From contig BQFW01000012.1 in NCBI GenBank assembly GCA_020891255.1, forward strand, positions 1,922,001-1,986,000: a stretch of 64,000 nt of DNA, in the 5' to 3' direction. The position numbers and the translations under genes are program-made. The DNA comes from Entomortierella parvispora E1425. Taxonomy: Eukaryota; Fungi; Mortierellomycota. A model generated the notes under the pieces. It saw nothing but the letters and a program-made list of their open reading frames with translations, was not told where the DNA came from and did not search any database. Each line of letters begins with the position of its first letter. Position 1 is the first letter of the stretch. This document shows positions 38,230 to 49,595 of the stretch, piece after piece.

Positions 38230-39264
38230 GGTGATTTGAGAAGGATCAGATTGGGGGACGAACAAAGAAAGATTCGACCATGCGATGAATGAAGCATGCA
38301 AACATGTGCCGTTGAAAAAGTGGCGCAAAACGTGACTTGCGACGCGTAAAAACTCGAGCGCACATCGATCCTCATAGCAAACACTGTCATCGAAATCACC
38401 ATCACCACTGCCATGATCACCACCACCACCACGCTTGACGAAAGGAAGCTTGTGCCAGAATACAGGTTCCAAGTCACTGGTTCCTAGATTTCGCCTTGAA
38501 ACAGCTTGGATTCAAACGTGCTATGGATGAAAAAAAAGTTATGACAGAAGCTACTTCATCTGTTCGCTCCACGCTGATCAAAGGCCATGCTTCTGTGGAC
38601 AAGCTTTGTTCACGCGTTCTTGGTCTTGTGGAAGAATACCATCGCTTGGTACCATTGAAGGTACATGTCGCCTATTTAAGCAGGATGCTGAGCTGTAGTG
38701 ATCTGTGAATATGAAGCGCAGGTGTTCAAGGAAGAAGAACTTTTAAAACGTGCACGCTCCAACAAACTAAAGGTAGATGTATAGTTCCATGAAAACTGTT
38801 TCTGAAGACAACTCGAAACTTGCTTTCTGCACATTAGTTAACGCCTTGCCCACCGATATACTACGTGCTGTGGCGTCTTTCAGGCTTACACGATGAAGAC
38901 CGCAGAGGCATATCTTTGAAGAGATGACGATTCTTGCTACGCGATCTGACATAATAACTGCTCTCTCGCAATCTCCACAGGCATGCATAAGGGTGATGCT
39001 GCTGTAGCCTTTTTACCGCTTCGCCACTTCAGCAATAGAGATTCCCTCTCGATGATCATCTTTTGAGCGTTTGATATTACCTGTAGACACGCAGCCGTAG
39101 ATTAATAAGTTAGTTTTCATCGAAGAAAAAAATATCGTTCGTGCTTCCGAAAGATAAAAGGAGCGTCCCACTTGTGATGCTGCTGCAGAGTTGCGAAGGA
39201 CACGGAGTGGTCAAAAGGAGCAAGACGAAAAAAAAAAGCTCGTCAAGTAGACGAGCAAAAGAAA

Positions 39265-39336
39265 GGGCCGAACCGGGAATTGAACCCGGGACCTCTCGCA
39301 CCCTAAGCGAGAATTATACCACTAAACCATCCGGCC
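39265..39336 (-). tRNA. tRNA-Pro (AGG)
   Basis: Exact reverse complement of 39489-39560; cloverleaf with CTCGC-TTAGGGT-GCGAG anticodon arm and GGTTCAATTCC T-arm. Confidence 0.97.
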
Positions 39337-39488
39337 AATCAACTTGTTGGGAGAAAAAGATATTAGACATTTATGATTCTGTCAGTGACTAATCACGTGA
39401 CCTCGATATAGTCACGTGACTGATACCTGTCCGTTCTGGAACTTGCCTTTATAGATGATTTCCCAAAAAATCTTCCATCAAGTTGATT

Positions 39489-39560
39489 GGCCGGATGGTT
39501 TAGTGGTATAATTCTCGCTTAGGGTGCGAGAGGTCCCGGGTTCAATTCCCGGTTCGGCCC
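39489..39560 (+). tRNA. tRNA-Pro (AGG)
   Basis: 72-nt intronless cloverleaf GGCCGGATGG...TTCGGCCC with anticodon AGG; T-runs downstream. Confidence 0.97.
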
Positions 39561-39597
39561 TTTCTTTTGCTCGTCTACTTGACGAGCTTTTTTTTTT
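39561..39597 (+). terminator. Pol III T-tracts with an intervening GCTCGTC-tactt-GACGAGC hairpin
   Basis: TTTCTTTT, a 7-bp perfect hairpin, then T10; mirrored on the other arm. Confidence 0.6.
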
Positions 39598-39735
39598 GGG
39601 TTTATCTATTTGACAACCCAGGTTGTTCGTTTTACCTGACAACCCACTCTATATTTGGTTAGTCTCGTTTTTTATTCGGCAACCCACCTGTCATTCCTCA
39701 ATTGACAACCCAGGTTGCCAAACAAACGTTTATTT

Positions 39736-42700
39736 TTATGAGTGCTGTCTAGAATTGTGACCTTCCCCGCTGCACACTCCACACTTCGTTGATTTTTTTT
39801 TTGTCTCCATGCTACTCTTTATCCGAGAAGTCCTCGGTCTGCCCTTCGTCTTTGTATAGTGAGGATCCTTCATACCTTCTTCGCCTGCCCCCCTCACAAT
39901 GACACGGTTTAGGCCATCTTTAACTGTTTCGAATACTTCTGGATTGGAGTTCACGGTGTCCATGATATTCTTCATCAGGCCAGATATCTCTCCAATGCGG
40001 CGTTTTTTGGAAAGGTTGCGTTTATCAACCCCCGACAGGGATGGCACTGAGGGGAAAACCTTCATGATATCGCTCATGAAAGAAGAAGCAGGCTCTCCCT
40101 CTGCACTCCCCACCTGAGCGACCGTCTTCTGCGTTTTTGCGCTCAAAAACGCCCCTGAGAGATCAAGATCTGTTAGGTCCTGCAGTTCTTCTTTAAACCA
40201 CCGCATCGGAATAAGCCTGACATGATACTTGCATCTGTCACTAACTTGCATCAGATGGAAATAGTGTCGACATACAAATCCGCTGTTTTGGAGGAGGAGG
40301 CAAGTACAAATGTACGAGCCATCAGCCAGTAAAAGTATGTGCTGAAGTGACTTTCGCTCCGTGTCCAAGCGGAACGTCACGTCGAAGATTTGTACAATTC
40401 GATCAGAACCAACGATTGTCTGGATGGACTGGAGAGAGCTCATTTCGCGATCGTCTTTTGACGATCTCTCAATCTAAGGACAAAGAGAAGAATAACGGCT
40501 TAGTACCTCTATCTGGTCTTAGGATTGCGCTTGGGTATTGGAATGATGTACAAGTACTTACTTCCTCGAAATCACCTCCTTCGATTGATCGTGGAGCACA
40601 GGCGTCTATACCTGTGTGTGGATTGGACTGATACAAAACAGAGCGCGACATCTCTAACTTCATCTGACTTTTTGCTGCGATGCCAAGATAGCGATTGTTT
40701 GCATCGATAACATCGGCAAACATTTGCTGAACAAACGTCGACGTTGCGGGATCAACCGTTGTATCCGTCTTGTAGAGAATATACTTTGAAGTCTGGGCTT
40801 CATTTGATAGCTTCTTTTCAATTGCCTCGAACAGTGCTGGAAGGGACGTCTTGCCATTGACGGCCCTTTTGATGGCCGCATTCATACTCTCCACACGCTG
40901 AGTCGACTGCATTCCGGCGGTAAATCTTGTCCCAACCCAAGGCCAAGCCCAGTGCTCGCGCTTCTCGCTTATCCTTTTCAGGTAACCCTCAATCTTTGGC
41001 TTATCAACACCAAAGACCGCAACATGCTCTGACCATCTACGCTCAAAATCGGAGGCCGTAAGCGCGTTTCGGGTTGTCCAAAAAGCTGATATAAAATCAT
41101 TCCAGTCTTTGCCTAGCGCTCCGTGGAGGTTTTTGTTCAGGTTTTGTCGCAGATGCCAGATACAGTTCAAGACGGTGGTCTTGCTTATAGTTGTGGCACA
41201 AGCGGCCTCCATAGCGGGATCTTCGTCGACGAAAATGATATGAGGATATACGTTGTCGCTTGCCGCCAACAGTTGCTCTAGAATCCACTCATAGTCCTCC
41301 ACTGATTCCCCAGAAACCAATGAACACCCTACCAAACGACTCTTTCCTGCATTGTCGATAATGACTATAACATTAAGAGGCATGCCGAAACGGTTCGTCT
41401 TGTAAGTGTTATCGCTGATGACAACATCGCGGTAGCGTCGGTAGAGGTATCTTTGAGAAGGGCTCATCCAGAACATCCTTCTGAGCCGGCCATTTTCATC
41501 CAGATCGGTAGCAAAGAACCAGTCTTTATCGTTGCGCGTTTTATCCTGTAGAATCTTGTGGAGCTCTGCAGCCTCGGAGCCACCGATGTGAGCACTGTTT
41601 TTTGCTTTCTGGATGGCATTTGCGACTGTCCGAAGATCGAACGCTTTGTCTGGCCATTCATGTTGAAGCATGTAAACAATAAACTTGGGATCACATTTGC
41701 CTGCATGGGTGGTAATAAGCTGGAGCATTTCGGCACTGAGTCGTTTATCACGCTGGTTGGACTCCAGGATGTCGCATTTCTTGAGTTCGTGGCAGTGGTC
41801 TGTGACAAGGGAAGTAATACGCCAACGTGGAAACAACTCCCTTGGAGACCGAACAACGATTTGGCATGGGCAGCACTCGCGGCTGGAGGTGCAATTGCGG
41901 TGCTTATCTGGGTCAACATTCTTTTGCGGAACATGTTTTCCAGCCTTCTTGCAACCAAAAATTACTATTCATCGGCAAACCATACTTGTGTCAAAAAGAA
42001 TTGATCCATAGAGAAAAAAAAACAACCTGCAGATTTTAAGTACCTACCTCGGGGACTTTGGCCATTCATCCTCTTGAGTCTGGACTGCATCCTTCTCAGG
42101 AAAAATCCTTGCTTGCGAGCCCATGCGTGGAGTTTTTTCTTCTAGTTCTTCAAGAGTTTCATGCAACTGGCCGATATAAGGTGTCCACGGCAGGCTGTCA
42201 CCCTCTTCAGCACTGTTGCCTGTGATGGCTATGGCGGCAGCCGCTACCTCTGCCCTGGCCCCACATGAAGAGGGTCCGTCAGCTGCAAGAGCATCACTTG
42301 TAATGGTTACGGCGGCGGCCGCTGCCTCTGCCCTGGCCCCACATGAAGAGGGTCCGACATTTAAGAAAGCATCACTTGTAATGGTCTCCTCTAGAATAGC
42401 CGCATCGGCTACAGCTGTAGTGACCCCATCTTCGGTAGGTATCTCTTCATTGACTGCGACTTTTACAATGGCGTTGTCTGTGATGATTGAGTCAGTTGTA
42501 ACTATGTCCGGATCATTTGCCGACACAATATCGAGATCAGCCACCCTTGCCACCCCTTGGCCTCGAGAAGCATGTGCTGCATGTTCGATCTAGATGAATT
42601 GAGTATTAATCTACGGTGGTCGGACAACGGGGGATTTGTGTCATACGTTACAAACAAGCAAAGATTCACCTTGTTGTAGCCGGTGGCCAGCTTCAAAAGC

Positions 42701-43815
42701 CTCAATCGATGATGTGCAGATCGTTCGTGAGTCCAGAGTTCTATTTCAGGATTCATTCTCCTCTCGACAGCATTGATGGAGTTGACAGCGCACGATCCAC
42801 TGCTAGCTGGTTGCCGTGGGACATCGAGATGCTCGATGTGGCTGCTCCAACGATCTATATCAAGCCCACAGCATCTTATCCATTGTCGTATCGCTTGACA
42901 GGCCTCACGAGGTGTGGGATAAGAGAGGGAATCCCCAAATGAGATCTGACATTTAACGAAATCGACCTCGATCGCACCCCAATGAGATGGCATATAAACA
43001 ATCGAGAATGCCTTTTCAACTCGCCCGCTTCGGAGCTCGTCCCTTTTCCATTCCAGGTATAGATTCTTTCGCCAGTTGTTGAGTTGAGTAGGTGTGATCA
43101 AAAGGTATCGATTGCTTGCCCCATACGACTCGGCAAAGAGCTGCAACACCGTGCGCACGACCTCGTCATTAATGAAGCACTCCTTCATGAGACAAAACGC
43201 GTTTCCAATGGCCAATGGCGCCTCAGAAGTTGGCTGAAACTCCCAATGGATGATGCCTGAGGTATTGGAAATTAGGTCGCGGATCCAATCGGCAAAGTTG
43301 CGATCCGAGACGGCATCGATCCAGTTAAACATCTCCATCGCTTGAATGATGAAAGTGTGCGTCTGCACCGCGCCGAGTAAGATTTTGACCGAGGCATGCG
43401 AGAAATCTCCAACGCCATGGATGCGAATGCCCCACGCCTTTTGAGACACTGACGCACCAACTATAAATAAACATATTGTAACTGTGCTGGTCAGGAGTTT
43501 TGCCAATTGACACCTAAACGAAAAGAGCAGCCGATGTTTTCTCTTATTGAACCTACGCAGCATTTCGTTGGCCTTCATAACAACATCTTGCGAAGGTAGC
43601 GTTTTGAGAATTGCAACTCTGGCTTCGAATATTCTCTCTTTGGGCGGTGGCAGCTCATATATGACCTCGACCTCGGTACAAGTTTTAGTAATCGGAAGGG
43701 GGATTTTCAGCAGTGCCTTGCCAGTTTGTAGCCTTTGCCAGTATTGGCTGTACATCACTTTCGATTCTTTCGACGTCCCTGGGTCGTCCACAAGATGATT
43801 AACAGCTGACGACAT
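39736..43815 (-). CDS. Ulp1-like protease fused to FAR1-MULE DDE-SWIM-zinc knuckle transposase; exons 43815-42670, 42589-42048, 41964-40562, 40473-39736; one extra base in T6 at 42133-42138
   Basis: C48 motifs HWGAIEVDF, FGDSL and PRQPASSGSC; FAR1-type AWARKQGF and CPC..W..HCH; DDE motifs DNTYKTN, FVDEDPAM, CIWH and QRVESMN; SWIM CTC..CRH; CGVCSGEGH. Three GT-AG introns give 1275 aa if one A is removed. Confidence 0.8.
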
Positions 43816-44071
43816 CCTATATTTTTTTTAAATGCCAAAATAGACTGTATCAGCAAAACGCTCCAAAGAACTTCAGTAGGTACGAGACAGACAACAAACC
43901 CCGTACAGAGAAGTATGGCTCGGCTGAGGTTATAAGATTCTTGTGAATCTTCGTCGGTGCCTACTGCCGTAGCTTTATATCAGAAGTTCCAACGTTTCAT
44001 TGTCTCCGCTTCGAGTAGAGTAACTCAAAACCCCGAACACTATTTGCAGTCTATGTGTATATACCATATAT

Positions 44072-47000
44072 GTACCATAGTCGGCCAAAAAAAAAAAAAG
44101 ATCCATTTTGCCTTCTGTATGCATGCAATTGACAGGCATCCTCTAAGTCATGGAGGGTGATAGTCCAGTGAGCTCTGACCTTGTCCGGTCCGGAAGACTG
44201 GAGCGGGTATCAGCCGTGTTTCTTTCCTCTGGTATTGATCTACCCCCGGTCAACCCTCAGTCAAAAAAAAAAAAAAAAAACCTCTGCATGCAAGAGTAGA
44301 CCATTCCTAATTGGGACTTCTGGCGACTCGCAAGGACTCGCAAGACGGTATGTGTACCATGGTCGGCCAAAAGAAAAAAAAAAGTGCATTTTGCCTTCTG
44401 TATGCATGCAATTGACAGACATCCCCTAGGTCATAGAGGGTGATAGTCCAGTGGGCTCTGACCTTGTCCGGTCCGGAAGACTGGAGCGGGTATCAGCTGT
44501 GTTTCTTTCCTCTTGTATTGATCTACCCCCGGTCAACCCTCGGTCAAATAAAAAAAAATCCTCTGCATGCAAGAGTAGACCATTCCTAATTGGGACTTCT
44601 GGCGACTCGCAAGGACTCGCAAGACGGTACGTGTACCATGATCGGCCAAAAGAAAAAAAAAAGTGCATTTTGCCTTCTGTATGCATGCAATTGACAGACA
44701 TCCCCTAGGTCATAGAGGGTGATAGTCCAGTGGGCTCTGACCTTGTCCGGTCCGGAAGACTGGAGCGGGTATCAGCTGTGTTTTCTTTCCTCTTGTATTG
44801 ATCTACCCCCGGTCAACCCTCGGTCAAATAAAAAAAAAAAGCCTTTGCATGCAACAGTAGACCATTCCTAATTGGGACTTCTGGCGACTCGCAAGGACTC
44901 GCAAGACGGTATGTGTACCATGGTCGGCCAAAAGAAAAAAAAAAGTGCATTTTGCCTTCTGTATGCATGCAATTGACAGGCATCCTCTAAGTCATGGAGG
45001 GTGATAGTCCAGTGAGCTCTGACCTTGTCCGGTCCGGAAGACTGGAGCGGGTATCAGCCGTGTTTCTTTCCTCTGGTATTGATCTACCCCCGGTCAACCC
45101 TCAGTCAAAAAAAAAAAAAAAAAAACCTCTGCATGCAAGAGTAGACCATTCCTAATTGGGACTTCTGGCGACTCGCAAGGACTCGCAAGACGGTATGTGT
45201 ACCATGATCGGCCAAAAGAAAAAAAAAAGTGCATTTTGCCTTCTGTATGCATGCAATTGACAGGCATCCCCTAGGTCATAGAGGATGATAGTCCAGTGAG
45301 CTCTGACCTTGTCCGGTCCGGAAGACTGGAGCGGGTATCAGCTGTGTTTCTTTCCTCTTGTATTGATCTACCCCCGGTCAACCCTCGGTCAAATAAAAAA
45401 AAATCCTCTGCATGCAAGAGTAGACCATTCCTAATTGGGACTTCTGGCGACTCGCAAGGACTCGCAAGACGGTACGTGTACCATGATCGGCCAAAAGAAA
45501 AAAAAAAGTGCATTTTGCCTTCTGTATGCATGCAATTGACAGACATCCCCTAGGTCATAGAGGGTGATAGTCCAGTGGGCTCTGACCTTGTCCGGTCCGG
45601 AAGACTGGAGCGGGTATCAGCCGTGTTTCTTTCCTCTGGTATTGATCTACCCCCGGTCAACCCTCAGTCAAAAAAAAAAAAAAAAAAACCTCTGCATGCA
45701 AGAGTAGACCATTCCTAATTGGGACTTCTGGCGACTCGCAAGGACTCGCAAGACGGTATGTGTACCATGATCGGCCAAAAGAAAAAAAAAAGTGCATTTT
45801 GCCTTCTGTATGCATGCAATTGACAGGCATCCCCTAGGTCATAGAGGATGATAGTCCAGTGAGCTCTGACCTTGTCCGGTCCGGAAGACTGGAGCGGGTA
45901 TCAGCTGTGTTTCTTTCCTCTTGTATTGATCTACCCCCGGTCAACCCTCGGTCAAATAAAAAAAAAAAGCCTTTGCATGCAACAGTAGACCATTCCTAAT
46001 TGGGACTTCTGGCGACTCGCAAGGACTCGCAAGACGGTATGTGTACCATGGTCGGCCAAAAGAAAAAAAAAAGTGCATTTTGCCTTCTGTATGCATGCAA
46101 TTGACAGGCATCCTCTAAGTCATGGAGGGTGATAGTCCAGTGAGCTCTGACCTTGTCCGGTCCGGAAGACTGGAGCGGGTATCAGCCGTGTTTCTTTCCT
46201 CTGGTATTGATCTACCCCCGGTCAACCCTCGGTCAAAAAAAAAAAAAAAAAGCCTCTGCATGCAAGAGTAGACCATTCCTAATTGGGACTTCTGGCGACT
46301 CGCAAGGACTCGCAAGACGGTATGTGTACCATGATCGGCCAAAAGAAAAAAAAAAGTGCATTTTGCCTTCTGTATGCATGCAATTGGCAGACATCCCCTA
46401 GGTCATAGAGGATGATAGTCCAGTGAGCTCTGACCTTGTCCGGTCCGGAAGACTGGAGCGGGTATCAGCTGTGTTTCTTTCCTCTTGTATTGATCTACCC
46501 CCGGTCAACCCTCGGTCAAATAAAAAAAAATCCTCTGCATGCAAGAGTAGACCATTCCTAATTGGGACTTCTGGCGACTCGCAAGGACTCGCAAGACGGT
46601 ACGTGTACCATGATCGGCCAAAAGAAAAAAAAAAGTGCATTTTGCCTTCTGTATGCATGCAATTGACAGACATCCCCTAGGTCATAGAGGGTGACAGTCC
46701 AGTGGGCTCTGACCTTGTCCGGTCCGGAAGACTGGAGCGGGTATCAGCTGTGTTTCTTTCCTCTTGTATTGATCTACCCCCGGTCAACCCTCGGTCAAAT
46801 AAAAAAAAAAAATCCTTTGCATGCAACAGTAGACCATTCCTAATTGGGACTTCTGGCGACTCGCAAGGACTCGCAAGACGGTACGTGTACCATGGTCGGC
46901 CAAAAGAAAAAAAAAGATACATTTTGCCTTCTGTATGCATGCAATTGACAGACATCCCCTCGGTCATAGAGGATGATAGTCCAGTGGGCTCTGACCTTGT

Positions 47001-47259
47001 CTGGATCAGAAGACTGGAGCGGGTATCAGCTGTGTTTCTTTCCTCTTGTATTGATCTACCCCCGGTCAACCCTCGGTCAAATAAAAAAAAAGCCTTTGCA
47101 TGCAACAGTAGACCATTCCTAATTGGGACTTCTGGCGACTCGCAAGGACTCGCAAGACGGTACGTGTACCATGGTCGGCCAAAAGAAAAAAAGATACATT
47201 TTGCCCTCTGTATGCATGCCATTGACAGACATCCCCTAGGTCATAGAGGATGATGGTCC
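44072..47259. repeat. Tandem array of ~281-bp units (11 complete plus a partial twelfth) inside the MULE
   Basis: GTACCAT anchors at 44072, 44354, 44633, 44915, 45199, 45478, 45762, 46043, 46326, 46605, 46887 and 47166; units differ by SNPs and A-run lengths. Confidence 0.97.
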
Positions 47260-47411
47260 GACATGTTCTTCTGGTTCGAAACAAAGGGACTGACTCGACT
47301 GACTCGTACATCCAGGCTTCTTGTGTCAGCAACTCCCACATGTATAAATATGTGTACTTGCGGCATCCAGTTCTGTATCTTGTCCTCCTCATCGTTCTCA
47401 CCTCTTCCAAC

Positions 47412-48264
47412 ATGCCTCGTGGTGCTTGCACTTACGGCTATTGCGCGCTAGGTCTCCTCCCCCCTGCCGAACCCAAGACCAAAAATCAGAAGAACCATGT
47501 TGCAGGGTATCACGTCGACAACCCCATCAAGTTCATGTGCGGGTACACTGATCGACAAGTCACCTTTAGTCGAATTCCCACAAAACACATGGATTTCGTC
47601 TGCTACTGTGGCCTGACGTTCACCCTTAACTCTTCGATCCATCGCCATTACCATTACTGTGCCGTTGCCAGGGACGCCGCCCTAAATGCAATCGCACATC
47701 CACCTCCTCCTGGTGCAGGTGGTGCAGGCGATGGCAATGGCGTTATTGTTGCGCCGGCGCCTCCTTCAACGGCCCTGGTGGTAGCGGAGCGCAGCGTCGG
47801 GGAGCATTCTGGAGGAAAAGTTGATTGAGCAACATCAAGCCTTCCTGGAGACGTTCACAGGACAGAGCGCGAAGCTCGTCGAGAGCATGACCCAGTCTCA
47901 GTTGTCGTTTCTGAACACCTTCACCGCTTCGTATGCTGAACAAGCTGTGGCACATCAGCGCAGCATCGCTGAACATAACCGCTTGGCCTTAGAGGAGCAG
48001 CGCACGGCCCTCGAGGAGCAGCGAGCTGCCATTGAGATGCAGCGAGCAGCTGTTGAGGAACAGAGAGTGTTCTACAATCGCCATCAAAACAATCAAGCAG
48101 AGATAATGGCCGAGCAGAAGCTTACAAGGGACGAGGTTAGAAACCTCATGTCACTCAAGCGCGATCGATCTTTCACGTTGGAAGTCAGCGAGCGAGCACT
48201 CAAAGGCCTTCAGAGTGACCCATCTTACATGGTCAGCCCCTGCCAGGACGACGAGGACATGTGA
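47412..48264 (+). CDS. MULE accessory gene: Cys/His motifs, Gly/Pro linker, coiled coil; apparent 1-bp frameshift near G4 at 47799-47802
   Basis: C-x4-C..H-x4-H and CYCG..HRHYHYC motifs in ORF 47250-47828. Removing one G joins SVG to SILEEKL-IEQHQAF of the helical ORF 47821-48264. Confidence 0.55.
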
Positions 48265-48512
48265 AAGACAGATAGTGCGCAATCCCACGTCGACGAAGTG
48301 TAACAGGTTATGTTCGCAATTATTCAATAAAAATATTCTTGCGAAATATCTTCTGATGCTATGGCGGACGAGGTGGACTTTTTTTTTTTTTACATATTAT
48401 TTGCTATGTCGAGACAGTGAAGCGAAGTGCGAGAACAAACTACTAACAATGAAGCCCGAATCCCCGCGCAACAAATGCCACGACTCATCGCTGTTTAATA
48501 AAGAATAAAATG

Positions 48513-49100
48513 TTACAAAAGTGTCGATATATGAACCTGGCCACGCACACCAGCCAGTAAGCGCTGGTCTGCCAGCTTAAGGTCATCTTGGGCATCTGGG
48601 CAACGGCCTTGGTGGTGGCCGGAGTGAGGTTTACCGCATTGGCAGGTGTCTGGTGGTAAGATCGTAGCAAATGCATTGTTCCAAGGTTGGCCTCGCTGTG
48701 CTTGCTTCTTCATCTTGGAGCGGATGCCTTGAGTCTTCTCCCAGGCAATAGTAACCTCGCCGCGTGTCTTCCGGATACGTGCAAGAGTATCCCTATCCTG
48801 ACGACGGATAAGTTGATGAGCAACTGCGACCACGACCGAGTGAGGGCCTTTAATAATTGGAGTCCAGGCCTTGATCGAAGCGCAGTGTAACACTCCTTGG
48901 TAGGCAGTGACGACCGACTGAGCCGATGCCAACGGGGCTGGTGCCAACGGGCTGGTGATCTGTCCCCTCACAGGAGGACAGGTCGTTGGCGAGTCATGGA
49001 AGGCAGAGTACAATGATGTCCACAAAGCCGTGTCCGATGGCTGGTACCATGGAGGCGGTTTCGGGCGGCAACTTCGGGTTTGCGGGCTTGTTGCGAACGA
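48513..49100 (-). CDS. Possible third MULE gene with a C-x-C-x7-H-x4-C motif; start unresolved
   Basis: Open frame ending ..DTCQCGKPHSGHHQGRCPDAQ..; no clear in-frame ATG inside the TIR. Confidence 0.3.
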   Translation of the reverse strand, partial: SFATSPQTRSCRPKPPPWYQPSDTALWTSLYSAFHDSPTTCPPVRGQITSPLAPAPLASAQSVVTAYQGVLHCASIKAWTPIIKGPHSVVVAVAHQLIRRQDRDTLARIRKTRGEVTIAWEKTQGIRSKMKKQAQRGQPWNNAFATILPPDTCQCGKPHSGHHQGRCPDAQDDLKLADQRLLAGVRGQVHISTLL

Positions 49101-49595
49101 GGTGGAGCTCACTATCTGACAACCCAGGTTTCCATGCAATTTTCCAAAGTGTGACTGGTGGGTTGTCAAACAAAACGAACAACCTGGGTTGTCAAATAGA
49201 TAAATCCTTTTTTTTTCGTCTTGCTCCTTTTGACCACTCCGTGTCTCCTTCAAGTAAGGTCGACCTCCAGTTTCCCATCAAACAGTTCCATGCACGTATT
49301 TAGTCTCTATTTATAATCATGGGCTTGAAAGCTATCAGGCGTAGAAAATGCGTCGACCCAATCCAGATCAAGAGAAAAAAAACCGTTGAAATGTTCGTGG
49401 GTACAATACACTGAAGCTTGCGGATCAAATTCGAGGCGTATAGCACGGTAATAATGAAGTTTTTAATGACAAAAAGAACGTGAGTGACTCTCCTATTTCG
49501 AGCTTGGATAATGACACCACAGTTCCCCATGGTGGCGGATATGGGATGGTCTGCCAACAGACAGAAATGCAGGGTGGTCGTCAGGTCGATGAAAT

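Follow-up and report, generated by a model that had tools for sequence, protein, structure and literature searches.

Why should a transposable element carry more than eleven copies of one short sequence between two of its own genes? The question is raised by a window of 64,000 nucleotides (the whole stretch of DNA analysed) from Entomortierella parvispora E1425, in which a tandem array with a unit of about 281 bp separates two genes that point away from each other. The array was found to be an internal, higher-order tandem amplification in the central non-coding region of a young E. parvispora Mutator-like element (MULE). As to its role, the reading favoured here, with a probability of roughly 40%, is that the array may represent an amplified upstream control region, i.e. 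a regulatory, factor-binding segment serving the two divergent genes. The features discussed below are collected in Table 1.

Structure of the array

Tandem Repeats Finder (TRF), run on the window, returned a single array (44067-47259, period 279, 11.4 copies, 94% matches). Splitting at a conserved word gave 11 full units of 279-284 bp from position 44072 onwards, arranged head-to-tail and followed by a 94-bp partial unit, and the 281-bp tandem array described in an initial annotation of this locus is thus real. The units were assigned to the types alpha (u1, u4 and u8), beta (u2, u5 and u9) and gamma (u3, u7 and u10), which diverge from each other by 3-7%, while u6 is an alpha/beta mosaic and u11 a diverged end unit. 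In combination, they display a higher-order pattern of about 843 bp with the three unit types plus one extra unit. The variant block that the initial annotation had seen recurring in units 1, 4 and 8 marks the alpha type, and variable spacers are absent from the array, as had also been stated.

The sequence motifs listed in that annotation were all recovered. The word TGCATGCA occurs twice per unit, giving 22 occurrences in the array and none elsewhere in the 64-kb window, GACTCGCAAG is found as a tandem pair in each unit, and CCGGTCCGG is present ten times in the array. Likewise, the two A-tracts per unit that had been noted were confirmed as 22 tracts of at least 9 bp (9-19 bp) in the 3.2-kb array, all reading A on the plus strand and with a spacing that alternates between approximately 176 and 105 bp. 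By comparison, only 21 A-tracts of at least 9 bp, both strands taken together, are present in the 54 kb outside the element, and such tracts are about 18 times as dense in the array as in the remaining window. Among the 39 distinct unit variants collected from all copies in the genome the variation is clustered, with longest invariant runs of 51 and 28 bp (permutation P = 0.005, an approximate value given that the units are mutual copies and evolve in concert). The 51-bp run is found, for instance, at window 44862-44912. The CpG observed/expected ratio is 0.65 in the array versus 0.87-0.91 in the arms of the element, a figure that carries no inference since the composition of a single unit is merely repeated.

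The array is carried by a Mutator-like element

A genome search that included the flanks showed that homology with other copies stops sharply at window positions 39598 and 49207. The sequence between these limits ends in terminal inverted repeats (TIRs) of about 50 bp that are 92% alike, and a clear 9-bp target duplication was observed in at least 6 of 12 copies, namely those with non-homopolymer target sites (e.g. copies D, E, H, I and L). The array is consequently the middle of a 9,610-bp Mutator-like element, and the three characters of the MULE superfamily, a transposase domain, TIRs and a 9-bp target-site duplication, are found together in it.

When the genome was searched with one unit, 121 matches were obtained, all of them within 12 elements and none free-standing. 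The head-to-tail repeats thus lie wholly inside the element and are present in its copies, as is characteristic of a transposon-internal array. The genome holds nine full copies and three copies of one deletion derivative, all with the array, as well as one 357-bp remnant without it. Since every full and derivative copy contains the array, it is not unique to the copy in the window, a possibility that the initial annotation had left standing. In the derivative, the left arm is reduced to 1,322 bp and the array to 3.3-4.3 units while the right arm is complete, and its three copies reside at sites with different target duplications; the derivatives have therefore transposed. The array is copied as a single block at each transposition. 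The remnant (L032:623-979, corresponding to G000:C15:992922-993278) consists of 16 bp of the left end fused to 341 bp of the right arm, with T-runs on its flanks, and is a MITE-like deletion product (miniature inverted-repeat transposable element) that lacks the array.

Age and turnover of the array

The order of unit variants is identical in eight full copies distributed over five contigs. The ninth, denoted C2, contains 7.4 units and is devoid of units 5-8; units 4 and 8, which border the loss, have the same sequence in the consensus copy if differences in A-run length are disregarded. A four-unit loss between identical units is the mark of unequal exchange. Across the 6.4 kb of the arms the eight 11.4-unit copies show no substitutions, only one-base indels of the kind that is typical of Nanopore homopolymer error, and C2 has two substitutions, both in the left arm. 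Within the array, 14 substitutions were found among the full copies, confined to three copies and all at positions that distinguish the unit types, and some are grouped in patches by which half a unit takes on another type. This pattern suggests recent conversion or exchange, even though short-read polishing of a repeat could give the same result. Unequal exchange or conversion alters both the unit number and the variant pattern, and the earlier proposal of unequal exchange between units is supported by the exact four-unit loss together with the conversion-like patches.

The arms of the derivative lineage are 0.3-0.4% from those of the full copies, and its units, which occur in a different order, are approximately 2.2% from the nearest full-copy unit. 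With unit types 3-7% apart, as compared to 0% in the arms of the full copies and 0.3-0.4% in those of the derivatives, the array must be far older than the present burst of copies. These comparisons indicate that the array turns over faster than its flanks and that it has been kept in an active lineage.

An upstream control region as the favoured reading

A coding repeat was excluded, as the two longest open reading frames (ORFs) of the array are without a Pfam family and unit lengths of 279-284 bp break the reading frame. Neither an Rfam family (E ≤ 1) nor, with ARAGORN, a tRNA-like gene turned up in the array, and the unit folds no better than shuffled sequences on either strand (z = 0.58 and -0.21). 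These results speak against a structured RNA or an RNA gene, and they lend no support to the small-RNA source put forward in the initial annotation, if this is taken to be structured. The stem proposed at the same time is retained as an imperfect inverted repeat, which does exist in the unit, but not as a structure, given that the unit folds like shuffled sequence.

TATA-like boxes, as read from the sequence, are located in the unique flanks, 90-95 bp beyond each array end, and the array is therefore upstream, intergenic sequence and not a core bidirectional promoter. The previous description of the array as occupying a bidirectional promoter holds insofar as the array fills the gap between the divergent transposon genes, but the core TATA-like elements are outside it. 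The distances to the two start codons given at the time (about 255 and 150 bp) agree with the measured values of 252 bp (ATG at 43815, minus strand) and 153 bp (ATG at 47412).

A control region is favoured because all units are found inside elements, in an order common to the eight full copies, and because the derivatives keep units. It is also favoured because the array has long been kept in the active lineage, with non-random invariant runs and dense A-tracts, and because TATA-like boxes flank an array that gives no coding, RNA-family or RNA-structure signal. Precedents are available in the tandem-monomer promoters of mouse L1 (PMC9022269, PMC6454616) and in MULE termini, where promoters and transposase sites occur together (PMC3310237). 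Long poly(dA:dT) tracts in fungi exclude nucleosomes and open promoters. The array would act as a control region common to both outward-facing genes, with the putative core promoters just beyond its ends, and each unit supplies two poly(dA:dT) tracts. These tracts bracket intervals of about 163 bp, which fits one nucleosome, and about 85 bp, which is too short for one. The shorter interval contains most of the 51-bp block, invariant in 39 of 39 unit variants, and this block is a likely factor-binding site. Eleven units would then provide a row of open, factor-bound sites, and the gain or loss of units would alter the dose.

A number of observations speak against such a role. None of the known fungal factor sites could be confidently recognized in the array, and the test on the invariant blocks, with units evolving in concert, is only approximate. 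Moreover, copies with 7.4, 4.3 and 3.3 units persist, and the full array is therefore not needed. Finally, the array is not conserved across the wider family, as is evident from a metagenomic relative. A metagenome scan for relatives provided three short contigs, of which L034 and L035 are 39-52% identical to the element in the Ulp1-like part and have very similar termini. In L034 the Ulp1-like ORF begins about 370 bp inside the terminus, without a long-period array, and L035 displays a colinear layout of Ulp1-like part, MULE domain, SWIM domain and terminus. Judging from this compact layout, the array, the second gene and a retroelement fragment in the right arm look like later additions in the E. 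parvispora lineage. A 12-bp x 9.9 tandem repeat in L034 (L034:1073-1191) is located outside the terminus, within an ORF, and is unrelated to the 281-bp unit.

The same facts allow for a strong and close rival, which we regard as a real possibility, namely that the array is a selectively neutral internal satellite. Slippage and unequal exchange would have expanded a piece of intergenic DNA in a master copy, and the resulting array would ride along, harming neither gene nor transposition. Tandem arrays inside transposons are common and often without a shown role (PMC3879986), L034 and L035 are compact and lack the array, and copies with 7.4, 4.3 and 3.3 units exist, while the full copies are too young for selection on copy number. 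Conversely, a divergence of 3-7% between unit types next to identical arms implies long survival, although tandem arrays collapse easily, and the non-random invariant blocks and the roughly 18-fold A-tract density likewise speak against neutrality.

Element termini and the second gene

The remaining readings connect the array to the proteins or RNAs of the element itself, or to the way in which the sequence was assembled. The motif GACAACCC is found three times at each element end and twice in the 54 kb outside the element. The repeated terminal word of L034 and L035 is GTCAACCC, present five and four times, respectively, and one base off GACAACCC. This 8-mer occurs exactly once per array unit (11 in total, in one orientation), for instance at window 44812-44819, and once in the 54 kb outside the element. 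In addition, the L035 terminus shares an exact 12-mer with the invariant block of the unit, as well as GTCAACC followed by an A-rich stretch. In a comparison of the unit with four termini, using real genomic segments as controls, the similarity was marginal (P = 0.08 overall, 0.045 for the two relatives), and local alignment of the unit with the element's own termini against genomic controls gave no significant result (P = 0.34-0.44). The terminal region of the family may be the origin of the unit, or else the unit may mimic it. A match to CATTCCT(C)AATTG at the left subterminus was discarded, being at chance level once all unit words were counted, and a k-mer scan for motifs common to the unit and the element arms gave weak enrichments only.

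The second gene encodes a 283-residue protein, EMPS_02794, in which an N-terminal Cys/His domain is followed by one long helix (residues 126-267) in a single-sequence model. About 60 relatives were retrieved in a full library search, and the ten named clusters that were looked up all belong to Mortierellaceae. Residues C6, C11, H29, H34, C64, C66, H79 and C83 are conserved among the relatives and make up the motifs Cx4Cx17Hx4H and CxCx12Hx3C. Pfam searches detected no family in the two ORFs of the second gene and none consistently among 40 relatives. The alignment-based model of the N-terminal domain was confident, with a pLDDT (predicted local distance difference test) of 82.9, and a structural search with it gave no clear match (best Foldseek E = 0.4; best Z = 4.3, to small C2H2-type fingers). 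Four paralogues are present in the E. parvispora genome, none of which adjoins a MULE gene. The second gene may thus have been captured from a host family, as opposed to being a long-standing partner of the transposase. The initial annotation had called it accessory, but a conserved partnership with this transposase family fits neither the unlinked paralogues nor the metagenomic relative, where the transposase gene starts at the terminus.

A platform to which the element's own proteins (the transposase or EMPS_02794) would bind, giving self-activation, anti-silencing or titration of the transposase as in VANC/VANDAL21, TnpA/Spm and the AtMu1 transposase, is unlikely on the present data. The distribution of the two 8-mers, with one GTCAACCC per unit, six GACAACCC in the element termini, five and four GTCAACCC in those of L034 and L035 and only three occurrences of the two words combined in the 54 kb outside, is in line with it. 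The same holds for the 12-mer shared with L035, for the two conserved Cys/His motifs and the long helix of EMPS_02794, suited to multimerising, and for the existing precedents (PMC5735166; bioRxiv 10.64898/2026.08.24.746577). However, the similarity between unit and termini is marginal overall and not significant for the element's own ends, the array 8-mer deviates by one base from the element's terminal motif, and EMPS_02794 has neither VANC domains nor an assignable DNA-binding fold, in addition to having paralogues unlinked to MULE genes in this genome.

MULE termini hold both promoter and transposase sites (PMC3310237). Along these lines the array could have arisen by amplification of a terminal region that held the promoter and transposase-binding sites in the ancestry of the family and has since become internal. 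The transposase and/or EMPS_02794 would bind there, at multiple sites, to switch both genes on or to counter silencing. This reading is rather improbable, but if true it would make the array a fungal counterpart of plant VANDAL/Spm/AtMu1 self-regulation, in a tRNA-adjacent element.

Still less credence is given to the array as a small-RNA source, i.e. a trigger of RNA interference (RNAi), or as a repeated structured RNA. Tandem repeats can feed RNAi and each unit carries an imperfect inverted repeat, but the Rfam, tRNA-gene and folding results given above offer no sign of either, and with both flanking genes pointing away from the array no known promoter reads through it. Lastly, an artefact of long-read assembly and polishing as the cause of the array length or its variants is very improbable, since the 12-unit order was independently assembled at eight loci on five contigs with a clean four-unit deletion at a ninth, even if the assembly is of the Nanopore plus Pilon type (PMC8759367), with one-base indels that resemble homopolymer errors, and variants can be exchanged among repeats by polishing with short reads.

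Other features of the element and its surroundings

The favoured reading, an amplified upstream control region, concerns the centre of the element, and the remainder of its sequence is summarized in Table 1. The Ulp1-like and MULE transposase parts adjoin each other in about ten paralogous loci, belonging to at least four other MULE families of the E. parvispora genome, and the protease-transposase pairing is consequently old. The zinc-finger/coiled-coil gene is linked to none of these approximately ten loci.

Table 1. Features of the Mutator-like element and its central array (window positions).
Feature	Position	Strand	Basis or remark
Tandem array	44067..47259	.	TRF; unit split and typing; order matching across eight full copies
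Full-unit starts	44072, 44354, 44633, 44915, 45199, 45478, 45762, 46043, 46326, 46605, 46887		Unit split
Partial unit, 94 bp	47166-47259		Unit split
Complete Mutator-like element, 9,610 bp	39598..49207	.	Homology limits; termini and 9-bp target duplications in 12 copies
Left TIR, about 50 bp	39598..39647	+	GACAACCC at 39612, 39638 and subterminal 39704
Right TIR, about 50 bp	49158..49207	-	GACAACCC at 49186, 49160 and subterminal 49118 (opposite orientation)
Transposase gene region, read away from array	39736..43815	-	Pfam; alignment of relatives; annotated protein P0001
Ulp1-like ORF	42502-43815	-	H278/D295/C342 invariant, Q335 nearly so (13 relatives)
MULE domain ORF	40469-41836	-	PF10551, E = 5.2e-20; PF00872, E = 1.8e-5
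SWIM-containing ORF	39736-40443	-	
TATA-like box TATAAAG	43973-43979	-	158 bp upstream of transposase-side ATG, outside array; putative function
TATA-like box TATAAATA	47343-47350	+	62 bp before ATG 47412, outside array; putative function
Second gene, read away from array	47412..48264	+	283 aa, annotated EMPS_02794 (P0062); one intron near 47805-47830
Retroelement-like family fragment in right arm	48379..49094	-	Begins with T13 run (+ strand) at 48379
tRNA-Pro(AGG) gene	39489..39560	+	Element starts 37 bp past its 3' end, within oligo-T tract

Directly to the right of the array, within window 47273-47306, a B-box-like GGTTCGAAAC is followed by two TGACTC words (47291-47306), which precede the TATA-like box of the second gene by 37-52 bp. 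The B-box-like and TGACTC words could be due to chance, and the 8-mer GGTTCGAA is expected about 0.3 times per element. The fragment in the right arm shows approximately 75% DNA identity to about 30 dispersed loci, and its translation matches portions of open frames elsewhere (1164-2361 aa in length) with 76% amino-acid identity. It has the appearance of a truncated piece of a retroelement that is now mobilized with the MULE. An ORF at 48513-49253 (minus strand), which has its start outside the element and was formerly listed as a third zinc-motif gene, is probably this retroelement fragment.

Each of the 12 copies with both ends (the window copy and those at loci L011-L031, examined through their flanks) is situated 24-69 bp beyond the 3' end of a tRNA gene, mostly within its oligo-T tract or next to it, and ten different tRNA species are represented. 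The end nearest to the tRNA gene is the left one in nine copies and the right one in three. In the window, identical tRNA-Pro(AGG) genes at 39265-39336 (-) and 39489-39560 (+) are part of an inverted duplication of about 370 bp (39228-39597, arms 81% alike), and the copy at C12:1766817 is flanked by a matching paired tRNA-Pro(AGG) arrangement.

Comparison with known systems

Transposon-internal tandem arrays are one known route to satellites and to new regulatory DNA. The array described here sits in a very recently active element, with natural variants of 11.4, 7.4, 4.3 and 3.3 units in one sequenced strain for which both RNA-seq (DRA013164) and Nanopore reads (DRA010776) exist, and effects of unit number on expression, chromatin and methylation could therefore be read directly. 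Arrays in autonomous fungal DNA transposons are rarely described, and none was found for a MULE in the literature searched. Arrays inside transposons are as such already known, from L1 monomers and VANDAL repeats to repeat-bearing MITEs, and the E. parvispora array is another case.

The mouse L1 promoters (A, Gf and Tf monomers) consist of tandem monomers, in which units of about 200 bp are arranged head-to-tail upstream of the coding region, are borne by the element and vary in number between copies (PMC9022269, PMC6454616), all of which is reminiscent of the present array. However, L1 is a non-LTR (long terminal repeat) retrotransposon with its monomers in the 5' untranslated region, each with promoter activity, whereas the E. 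parvispora carrier is a cut-and-paste MULE with the array between divergent genes and the TATA-like boxes outside. The short satellite-like array of DTC84 from Donax trunculus is likewise contained in a TIR-bounded element and spread by transposition (PMC3879986), and plant MULEs with tandem TIRs exhibit tandem duplication of sequence bearing promoter and transposase sites (PMC3310237). Elements of these kinds are mostly non-autonomous or duplicate the termini themselves, in contrast to the autonomous E. parvispora element with its central array and three-type higher-order pattern. The subterminal repeats of En/Spm and Ac lie within a few hundred bp of the termini, whereas the array is separated from the left end by 4.5 kb and from the right end by 1.9 kb.

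Within the Mutator superfamily, VANDAL21 and VANDAL6 of Arabidopsis also carry extra genes and fast-evolving non-coding tandem repeats, including some upstream of the transposase gene (PMC5735166). The VANDAL repeats concentrate a 9-bp VANC-binding motif in several regions, while the E. parvispora element has one central array of 281-bp units and no VANC homologue (no DUF1985/DUF287). The AtMu1 transposase, in turn, acts as an activator at its own termini (bioRxiv 10.64898/2026.08.24.746577). If proteins of the E. parvispora element itself were to bind the units, the kind of transposon self-regulation seen in plants with VANDAL/Spm would extend to early-diverging fungi.

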